Origin: Octopus bimaculoides
Taxonomy: Eukaryota
DNA length: 64,000 nt
Direction: 5' to 3'
Assembly (NCBI RefSeq): GCF_001194135.2
Contig: NC_068981.1
Span: forward strand, 144,078,552 to 144,142,551
Under the pieces are notes generated by a model. That model was not told the origin of the DNA. It saw nothing but the letters and a program-made list of their open reading frames with translations, and searched no databases. The position numbers and the translations under genes are program-made. Shown one piece after another: positions 53,501 through 56,500 of the stretch (its first letter is position 1; the number at the start of each line of letters is the position of its first letter).

Positions 53501-56500
53501 TTTCCAACAAGTAACCTGCGACTATCATCCATTGTAGTGGTTCTCAACTATTGTCCATAAGATTTTTGGCAGTTCATGCAGCAAAATAGTAAATTGGAGA
53601 TCCACAATAGCATTTTGAGGAACCCTGAAAAAATTTTGCTTTTGATATTTGTATTGGTATGTATTGAAAGAAACAGATTGCTTTCTCTAACATCTTACAT
53701 AATTCAACCTACACAAGTTTATGTGTGCAAAACAAAATAGGAATTTTGAAAGAAGTCTCTATAAAGCTAGATTTTATACACTGATTACTATTTTATTCTA
53801 GTGGACCTCCATAATCATTCAAAGTGGTCCAGAGATAAAAAATGGTTGGAAACCTGATTATTTAATATCTTATTCTTGGCAGTGTCCACATTCCCAAAGG
53901 ACTATGTTTGGTAGCCAAGAATGCTATTTATCATTATATTGGGAAACAATGCTATTTTATACATTCAAGAATAAAATACTAGATGACAATTGCAGATTAT
54001 ATCAACTGAAATTTTATGACACTGAAAATACAACCTAAATATGGAGTTTACAGTTCATAAAAAGAGAAACCTTTAATCTGACAGTGGATAAAATAAATAA
54101 CCTATTTTAGTGCTAATGCCACTTGTGGTTGATGTTAGGAAGAAGATTCAGCTGCAGAATTCATGGCTAAAATTGGATCATATTAGCAAGACAGTCTTAA
54201 CCTGTCTAGGACAGTAACTCAAACCGTGACCTGTCCAGCCAATATGAGCACAAGACATTGGACATAGGTGAACATTAGAGGATGAATTGCTGGCAGATCT
54301 TACATAAAGAGAGAAATAAGGAAAAGCATACCAAAAAACTCACCTTAACTGTAATGACTCCATCCCGGCCAACTTTTTTCATAGCACTGGAGATAATGTC
54401 CCCAATGGAACGGTCACCATTAGCAGAAATGGTAGCTACCTTTATAAAGTAACAAAAATTCAATTTCAGAAATAGCAGCATGGATTGAATGCAATTCATT
54501 TGCTTAACAACAAAGAAAAATACTGAATACTTGTCTCCAAAAACAAGTACAACTGTTATCAACAGCCATTTACTGAATAGGAGTTTTACTTTAGCACTAG
54601 TACGAAAATTCAGAGACAAATGGTCCAGAACTGTAGGAAGTAAGTGCATTTTATAATATAGGAAAGAACATAGCACACTAAAGCTATATCTTCCTAGTCG
54701 TGGTAAGTTACCAACAATATACAAATTCAATTTAAAAAGATGTCATGAAGACAGGACAAGAGAGAAATTCAGAAGGAAGATCTCACTGAAAGAATAAGCA
54801 GGATATTAACTATCGCATTTTTTAGTGTATGCAATAATTTGCTGTCTTATCACTTCTTGCCCTTGATACACAAAAATAGCAAGATTGCCAACACATATTG
54901 GCTTAATATTAAAATATACATAGGATTTCAAAGAAAAGAAACCATGTAACAAACCAGAGAGAATAAGCATTAACCGTTTTAACAAAGCCCAACTTATATA
55001 ACCTCTAGCATCTAAATTACTTTATCAAATGTAATCCTTATTTATTCACATTGCTTTGAATTAATCAAGCATTATCTTGTAGCTTTGAGAATTTGATGAC
55101 ACAATGTTTAATCTTTTAGAATGACATTGTAGGGTAAGTGTAAGAAACCAGATCTGGTCAGATTGAGCATAAAACAGGTAGACTATCTTGGCTGGATATG
55201 GCTGGTTTAAATACTGAAGGGTTAAAGCAATCATCTTGTCAAAAAGTATCATGGCATGAATAAGGACGAAACTTCAAATGGTTAACATTTATATAATATA
55301 ATATCATGATTGTTTAACGTCCGCCTTTCATGCTTGCATATAATAAGACATGCATCTTATCTCCGAAATCTTGACCAGACAAACAACATTGCTTACTGCA
55401 TTTTCATATGTTAATCAAATATGTAAACCAGGAGTCACCAAAGGGGGTCAGAGGGACTTCCTATGGGTCAGTGAGGAATTACAAGGGGTCGATGGGGTCA
55501 GCATACAAAAGACCACCTCACCCAGAGGAGCTGCTTGAAATACTTAGTCAGCGCCATGAGACGTGAGAAAGCATAAATTTTCACTGCAACAAGAAGTCTA
55601 CCGTTGCTGACATTCGAGATCGAAGATTGAGAGGAGTGATTGAGGGACTACAGACTGTCAAGTGTTGGCTTATGGAAATGACCAAGTCTGCTAAGGGAAA
55701 TAAGATATTAAATACATAACACAAGCGTTTTTGCCAGCATCAGTACCTGGTACGCCTTTCAGATATGGTATGGTGGGGCAGGGTATTAAGATATTTTAAA
55801 TGAGGAGGGTGTTGTAAAAGCTTGGTGGCCCCTGATGTAAACAAACGCAGCAGACAAATACATGCATCACATTCTTTCACACTTCATCTAACACATCCAC
55901 TCACAAAGTCTTGGCCCTCCAGGTGCTAAATAACAGGAGACACTCGCCTAATGTGCCATGCATTGAGACTGAAAATGAAACCACATGGTTAGGAAGCAAA
56001 CTTCTCAACCACATAGCCATTCCTGCAATTATCTAACAGTAAAGGAATTTCACTTAAAAACCAAGGGTCTATTAGACTTTATCCATGGCTTCGGACAAAA
56101 TATAAGCTTGACATTAGGAAACAATATAAACTATAAGTAACAAAAGATACAATATAAATTTTCCATACCTGGGCAATCTCTTCAGGTGTTGTGACTTGCC
56201 TGGACTGATTCTTTAGTTGCTCTACGACAACATCAACAGCATTCATAACACCATGTCTAATCTCTATGGGGTTAGCTCCACGACTGATCTTGTCAAACCC
56301 TTCTTTGGCAATAGATCGAGCAAGCACTGTAGCTGTTGTAGTGCCATCACCAGCCTCCTCATTTGTATTGTTGGCAACATCTTGCACCAACTTAGCTCCA
56401 ATGTTCATAAATTTGTCCTTCAACTCAACAGCTTTGGCAACAGTCACACCGTCTTTAGTTATCTTAGGGCTTCCCCAGCTCTGTTCAATGATCACATTTC

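Follow-up and report, generated by a model that had tools for sequence, protein, structure and literature searches.

The closest described counterparts of the element considered here are the box H/ACA small nucleolar RNAs (snoRNAs) encoded in metazoan introns, which Rfam collects as SNORA families. The element lies in a 64-kb window of the Octopus bimaculoides genome (contig NC_068981.1; the window is the whole stretch of 64,000 nucleotides (nt) that was analysed), within an intron of the gene for the mitochondrial chaperonin HSP60. HSP60 is a highly expressed housekeeping gene. A first-pass annotation had proposed the element as the gene's third H/ACA candidate, next to a tandem pair upstream. 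The likeness to metazoan H/ACA snoRNAs lies in the hairpin-hinge-hairpin-tail order, the ANANNA motif in the hinge and the ACA 3 nt from the end; pockets 14-15 nt from their boxes, a length of about 120 nt, the sense orientation and the housekeeping-host intron are likewise shared. Unlike those RNAs, the candidate has short, AU- and GU-rich stems, reaches no Rfam threshold and has no target above chance.

The block from 54648 to 54529 is probably a genuine, lineage-restricted box H/ACA snoRNA gene, and it looks like a diverged paralogue of its host's other H/ACA genes. This reading draws on the ends of apparent retro-copies in another octopod, on boxes and a 5' pocket that are unchanged between species, on stem changes that keep pairing, on RNA contigs from one run (X18) and on the host context. 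Cephalopod snoRNAs are, to our knowledge, almost unannotated. If the call is right, one H/ACA guide RNA is added, and octopus HSP60, apparently like that of snail, whelk and mussel, holds several snoRNAs, which would give annotators a conserved host gene. As a snoRNA by itself the candidate is unsurprising; the notable part is its apparent retro-amplification in one octopod.

Two further systems serve for comparison. Yeast snR43 is the guide for pseudouridine (psi) 73 of 5.8S ribosomal RNA (rRNA) and for a 25S site. Type-1 snoRNA retroposons (snoRTs) consist of a snoRNA, 0-9 nt of other sequence and an A-rich tail; truncated versions are also known (PMC1687206).

The steps by which such an RNA would be made and act are taken throughout from knowledge of the H/ACA class. 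(i) The HSP60 intron would be transcribed along with its host gene. (ii) Dyskerin/Cbf5, Nop10, Nhp2 and Gar1 would associate with both hairpins and with the H box and ACA. (iii) After splicing, exonucleases would trim the intron to a protected RNA of about 120 nt ending 3 nt past ACA. (iv) The open hairpin pockets would pair with a target RNA, positioning one uridine for conversion to pseudouridine.

Layout of the candidate RNA

RNA positions are numbered along the minus strand from position 1, at 54648. The parts of the candidate and the intron that holds it are the following.

54440..56168, minus strand: host intron between HSP60 coding exons 2 and 3 (tblastn exon map, RNA splice joints)
54529..54648, minus strand: predicted mature box H/ACA snoRNA, 120 nt (sequence, fold); the 5' end is possibly at 54649-54652
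54594..54647, minus strand: 5' hairpin; lower stem positions 2-6/51-55, upper stem positions 17-26/32-42; minimum-energy fold -10.8 kcal/mol
54633..54642, minus strand: 5' pocket, 5' strand UACUUCCUAC, positions 7-16
54599..54606, minus strand: 5' pocket, 3' strand UUCGUACU, positions 43-50; pocket top to H box 14 nt
54587..54592, minus strand: H box AAAGUA (ANANNA), read in the sequence
54535..54583, minus strand: 3' hairpin; lower stem positions 66-69/111-114, upper stem positions 81-88/92-99; fold -11.1 kcal/mol
54532..54534, minus strand: ACA box, read in the sequence; 3 nt follow, then the predicted 3' end at 54529

Read from the minus strand, the candidate RNA is UGCACUUACUUCCUACAGUUCUGGACCAUUUGUCUCUGAAUUUUCGUACUAGUGCU-AAAGUA-AAACUCC...GGAG-ACA-AGU. 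It has the two hairpins, hinge and tail of the class, with ANANNA in the hinge. When the halves are folded separately, each forms an unbranched hairpin that closes beside its own box. In the 5' half, 5 bp (GCACU/AGUGC) make up the lower stem and 9 bp the upper, with a pocket of 10 and 8 nt between them; the lower stem of the 3' hairpin is CUCC/GGAG, 4 bp. ACA stands 3 nt from a mature 3' end that is placed by the common end of the copies found in a second octopod (organism E, below).

H/ACA pockets are expected to open 14-16 nt from the box. The first-pass annotation had given a spacing of 14 nt for both hairpins of the two-hairpin, AAAGUA and ACA layout. The layout and the 5' value hold. On the 3' side the spacing is 9 nt in the minimum-energy fold, which partly closes the pocket, and 15 nt, counted from U100 to ACA, once a U81-R99 pair supported by the orthologues is included. 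The distance of 89 nt to the 3' splice site is borne out: the intron ends with AG at 54441-54440, and 89 nt separate the last RNA base, 54529, from the exon. The hairpin loops, CAUUU and GAU, contain no CAB box (UGAG), and nothing suggests a Cajal-body RNA (scaRNA).

Copies and orthologues in related species

DNA contigs of four close relatives, organisms B, C, D and F, were aligned across the whole region, and organism E was added as a more distant relative. The HSP60 exons of B and C diverge from the window by 1.6-3.3%; those of E differ by 4.6-5.3%, about twice as much. Organisms B, C, D and F each hold the block once, at an unchanged intron position, with flat read depth (at 80% likeness). 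In E its depth is 10- to 180-fold higher. Against a single-copy depth of about 11 in the E DNA run X42, summed depths are 500-2000 across 54530-54628 and about 100 across 54629-54650. The copies appear in 27 X42 contigs with unrelated flanks.

The edges of the copied unit are the main evidence for the snoRNA call. On the RNA 3' side every copy stops at 54527-54530, at most 2 nt from the position 3 nt past ACA, and the flanks that follow (RNA strand, after 54527 and 54530) begin AAAAAAAAUUUUUU... and GUAAAAGAAAAC..., respectively. An A-rich tract follows the 3' end in several copies. On the high-coordinate side the copies stop at 54588, 54596, 54602, 54604, 54616, 54621 or 54649-54650; the upper boundary of the multi-copy block is placed at 54649-54652. 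The edges of the unit thus lie 0-4 nt from the ends that H/ACA rules predict, with ACA 3 nt from the common end. Since an H/ACA layout turns up about once per 60-100 kb, an unrelated repeat could show such edges only by great coincidence.

One E contig, at single-copy depth, joins diverged upstream intron to the block, which indicates that E also holds the block at its HSP60 locus. Against the window, that upstream intron (54669-54768) has 15 listed substitutions plus indels; over the 120 nt, the E copies show one nearly fixed change and a few at minority level, among them an H box variant, AAAGUU, in one minority copy. So few changes compared with the neighbouring intron argue that the source gene has been under constraint.

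Retro-copying of an RNA that had the predicted ends would give this pattern. Like the type-1 snoRTs of mammals (Weber 2006, PMC1687206), the E copies comprise the snoRNA, 0-2 extra nt (within the 0-9 nt of the type) and an A-rich tract; they are partly 5'-truncated, lie in many different flanks and are lineage-specific, given the single copy in B, C, D and F. They differ from mammalian snoRTs in having an octopod host and a copy number apparently far above that of most of them. At least one copy is transcribed, as RNA contigs with an A-run flank (run X43) indicate. That an intronic H/ACA snoRNA gave rise, in one octopod lineage, to a family of retroposons with about a hundred members or more is a serious possibility, held tentatively. 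The genome concerned is already known for heavy activity of short and long interspersed elements (SINEs and LINEs). If the possibility is true, it amounts to a snoRNA-derived, SINE-like element outside vertebrates, whose copies might become the starting point of new guide RNAs or of small regulatory RNAs. We know of snoRNA retroposition mainly from mammals; the amplification would extend it to molluscs and give a natural end-mapping of the mature RNA.

Among the orthologues in B, C, D and F, seven events fall within the 120 nt: G99A (all four), C9U, C9A, A51G, G18A, U37C and the insertion of an A. A51G and G18A occur in D and F, and U37C in C. Position 9 (54640) has three states: the window and E have C, D and F have U, and B and C have A; it belongs to the 5' pocket strand and lies outside the part proposed to pair with 5.8S rRNA. 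Each of the four stem changes keeps a standard pair: A51G gives U-G, G18A gives A-U, and G99A and G83A, the latter seen in E, turn G-U into A-U pairs (the first as U81-A99). Over 26 pairs in five species, 14 of them in the 5' hairpin, 100% of the 130 cells are paired. The remaining changes sit in a bulge or in pocket positions that the proposed pairing does not use. The H box and ACA are unchanged in B, C, D and F, and pocket positions 10-16 and 43-50 in all five species.

The intron segment at 54669-54738 stands out as hypervariable: five close species differ there by about 30 substitutions and indels, including a 13-nt insertion in F, a rate far above that of the rest of the intron. The first-pass annotation had described a further hairpin and an ANANNA box at about 54653-54700, immediately upstream. 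That proposal is rejected, since these features fall in the most variable part of the intron, and they lie outside the retro-copied unit.

RNA from the window species adds a minor signal. Run X18 has three short contigs over 54535-54602, of 48-68 nt and with depths of 4-14, two of which are fold-back chimeras; the host exon has a depth of 31, and the sole other unique contig of the host intron 2.8. This is a weak local enrichment, short of proof for a mature RNA.

Contrary evidence and alternative readings

A number of results weigh against a snoRNA gene. The fold of the whole molecule is no more stable than that of dinucleotide shuffles (z = -0.11). In a generic H/ACA scan, with thresholds fixed after the fact, the candidate is the single strict match in 128 kb of real sequence, and the dinucleotide-shuffled window yields 2.25 equally good matches per 128 kb; under relaxed settings there are 11.5 shuffled and 9 real matches. 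With such a match rate and a z-score near zero, the structure by itself gives no weight.

Known H/ACA family models, to which the first-pass annotation had pointed, bring no support either. Rfam at gathering score gives no match in the whole 64-kb window. Permissive matches are at noise level: the best, to SNORA54 (RF00430), is a weak full-length alignment of 14.2 bits (E = 4), against a gathering score of 60, so that membership of a listed family falls short of the threshold. No sequence likeness of the candidate to any listed family was found.

No target rises above chance either. The first-pass annotation had the 5' pocket guide a conserved pseudouridine of 5.8S rRNA, and its arithmetic is correct: the 3' strand, UUCGUA, pairs with UGUGAA over 6 bp, two of them G-U, and the 5' strand pairs with GCAGGA at 5 of 6 positions, the mismatch being the second pair from the pocket top. 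Its significance does not survive comparison with shuffled pockets. The search covered 740 conserved uridine contexts in 120 metazoan ribosomal DNA contigs that carry an exact 5.8S pattern (from metagenomes, used in place of octopus rRNA). There, the 5.8S U73 site is the best conserved match of the 5' pocket in canonical register; 111 of 400 shuffled pockets (28%) score equally on some conserved site, which is chance level. For the 3' pocket the best conserved match is 18S GAGUA-U-G-GUUGC, with only 5 + 4 bp. Neither pocket has an rRNA target above chance in these contigs, and no match of at least 8 bp was found in the small nuclear RNA sequences used. The 5.8S U73 pairing is one possible target only. 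As in yeast snR43, it would put U73 (GAA-U-UGCAG) atop the 5' pocket; unlike that guide, the candidate pairs over 11 bp with 2 G-U and an internal mismatch, at chance level, and no second pocket match to a large-subunit site was found.

The site had been equated with psi73 in yeast, which is right, and psi69 in human, which is not. Counted along human 5.8S, the targeted uridine is nucleotide 73; the guanosine of Gm75 stands 2 nt further in the 3' direction. In yeast, the single 5.8S pseudouridine is at U73; Arabidopsis Gm79 lies opposite human Gm75, and Arabidopsis psi78 beside the yeast site (PMC8351944). This alignment places yeast psi73 two nt on the 5' side of the guanosine at Gm75. For vertebrates, 5.8S pseudouridines are listed at 55 and 69 (PMC2653536).

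Contrary points also come from RNA and from the species comparison. The poly(A)-type deep paired-end runs X24, X39 and X40 show the spliced exon and no reads on the block or intron. X14 and X15 each give one contig of about 150 nt, at a depth of 2-5, that runs past one end of the candidate, both ends being overrun between them, as would be expected of pre-mRNA. The X43 contigs of organism E derive from a retro-copy and not from the HSP60 intron: their flank is a retro-copy flank seen in X42, and they were rejected as a mature RNA or a conservation footprint. The single A inserted in B and C lies in an A-run (positions 78-80) that is part of the 3' pocket's 5' strand. In the 87 nt that separate the block from the 3' splice site there are 6 events, against 7 in the 120-nt block, a similar rate; at this shallow depth, constraint on the candidate is not clearly greater than on its downstream neighbour. 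In the cross-species alignment, which the first-pass annotation had suggested as a test for covariation, no two-sided compensatory change is seen among the orthologues; stem changes keep pairs and the boxes are unchanged.

The two leading alternatives are a remnant of an old repeat whose layout only imitates an H/ACA RNA, and a paralogue in decay that has lost its function. For the first, the block would be part of an old SINE that folds like an H/ACA RNA by accident, and the E copies a burst of that repeat family, with no bearing on snoRNA function. Chance supplies such layouts 1-2 times per 128 kb in this AT-rich sequence, the host intron is full of very-high-copy repeats, and depth in E peaks in mid-block, most copies being without the first 20 nt or so. 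A chance resemblance, however, would hardly bring both repeat edges to within 0-4 nt of the ends predicted for the snoRNA and leave ACA exactly 3 nt short of the edge that the copies share. Nor does it sit well with a block that is single copy at one intron position in B, C, D and F, that is far more alike between window and E than the neighbouring intron is, and that resembles the host's two other H/ACA genes. A SINE origin is therefore rated unlikely. That last resemblance is what a decaying copy of a tandem-pair snoRNA would share: still transcribed within the intron, it would no longer form a stable particle or act as a guide. The 5' hairpin is similar to that of the pair, both hairpins fold weakly (-10.8 and -11.1 kcal/mol, where other mollusc HSP60 candidates have -24 to -50), no target is significant, the substitution rate among close species resembles that of the flanking intron and the RNA signal is low. 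Yet decay would have to leave boxes, stems and 5' pocket intact in five species, with only pair-keeping changes in the stems, and conservation between window and E much above that of the neighbouring intron. An RNA with mature ends must also have been abundant in the germ line of the E lineage for so many retro-copies to arise. Decay is thus judged somewhat less likely still than a SINE fragment.

A structure that aids splicing of the host, for instance by bringing the branch site near the 3' splice site with no separate RNA made, would account for the 87 nt next to the splice site being about as conserved as the block. It leaves unexplained the E copies of exactly the 120-nt unit, the H/ACA boxes at canonical spacing and the likeness to other H/ACA genes, and appears very improbable.

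HSP60 as a probable host of several H/ACA genes

The reading of the block as a working H/ACA gene gains context from the rest of the host. The tandem pair reported by the first-pass annotation exists: two near-identical H/ACA candidates, clearer than the third, precede the HSP60 start codon at a distance of about 1.2 kb from each other and probably occupy an intron of the 5' untranslated region. Both were compared with a covariance model, R1, built from the third candidate (54529..54648) and its orthologues.

59088..59214, minus strand: H/ACA gene, tandem pair copy 1 (H/ACA scan, fold, SNORA1 24.8 bits, candidate-derived model R1 21 bits)
60263..60391, minus strand: H/ACA gene, tandem pair copy 2 (H/ACA scan, fold, SNORA1 23.1 bits, model R1 22.8 bits, E 0.026)

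The pair has an H box ACAGAA, ends in ACAUUU and ACAUAU, and folds at -24 to -26 kcal/mol. Its SNORA1 scores (24.8 and 23.1 bits) are below the Rfam threshold. The matches to R1 (22.8 and 21 bits, E 0.03-0.06) come with a similar 5' upper stem-loop. Pair and third candidate are alike in this stem-loop, in host and strand and in overall layout. They differ in their pockets and in stability, the pair being more stable, and the 3' pocket motif of the pair recurs in HSP60 introns of snail and mussel, where no counterpart of the third candidate was found. In several RNA runs the bin 59006-59192 has very high depth (X14: 3020, against 527 for the exon); a T-rich low-complexity tract lies in the same bin, so that the depth may stem from either.

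The mollusc comparison used the HSP60 loci of Biomphalaria glabrata (L121), Babylonia areolata (L122) and Sinanodonta woodiana (L123). An intron after ...EEIAQ is common to the three, and this intron, the orthologue of the host intron, contains no H/ACA candidate and no clear homologue by R1 in any of them. Strong H/ACA candidates (-28 to -50 kcal/mol) occur several times in other HSP60 introns of snail, whelk and mussel. None of them reaches the Rfam threshold; one in a Biomphalaria HSP60 intron matches R1 at 18.5 bits. Four candidates, in HSP60 introns or upstream regions, carry the 3' pocket motif of the tandem pair, CACUUUCC...GGCAU.

L121 (Biomphalaria), 1276-1397: candidate with CACUUUCC...GGCAU
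L123 (Sinanodonta), 18171-18292, 19024-19144 and 20732-20853: candidates with CACUUUCC...GGCAU
L121 (Biomphalaria), 1857-1980, 7529-7651, 8445-8574 and 9075-9204: further H/ACA-like candidates, HSP60 introns
L122 (Babylonia), 8273-8407 and 13627-13753: further H/ACA-like candidates, HSP60 introns
L123 (Sinanodonta), 6930-7057, 10519-10656 and 11828-11965: further H/ACA-like candidates, HSP60 introns

The recurrence of the motif suggests a putative snoRNA family that has been kept in mollusc HSP60 genes and is absent from Rfam. Some of the further candidates are tandem paralogues, and those at L121 7529 and L122 13627 have a common 5' hairpin. The Biomphalaria element at 8445-8574 was considered as an orthologue of the third candidate, with which it has CACUUAC..UCCUA in common, and was rejected; its 3' pocket strand differs. 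The proposal that HSP60 is a multi-snoRNA host gains from the tandem pair together with the several mollusc candidates; this role looks supported and old in molluscs, and the third candidate seems to be a paralogue of more recent origin, at the level of octopods.

The host gene itself lies on the minus strand of the window. Eleven coding exons were assembled by tblastn, guided by a human HSP60 sequence, and by splice joints in RNA contigs.

58970-58803, 56504-56169, 54439-54344, ... to about 47390, minus strand: HSP60 coding exons (tblastn, RNA splice joints)

The assembled protein has 576 residues and is 99% identical to Octopus vulgaris HSP60 (P0121, name from a public source). In mammals, HSP10 (HSPE1) and HSP60 stand head-to-head; tblastn found no HSP10 in 47000-64000, a range that extends only about 5 kb upstream within the window.

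In the host intron, 54915-56139 consists of very-high-copy repeats, with a summed depth of up to about 7x10^5 at 55005-55111 in related-species DNA. Retained-intron RNA contigs of organism C join 54914 to 56140 through 21 other letters, the repeats being absent, so that a transposon insertion, or a deletion in C, is likely. At 58071-58631 the first coding intron contains a repeat of extremely high copy number that includes a (TA/CA)n microsatellite and a short N run (assembly gap); weak matches to mir-297, mir-1277 and mir-4012 in this segment come from the microsatellite.

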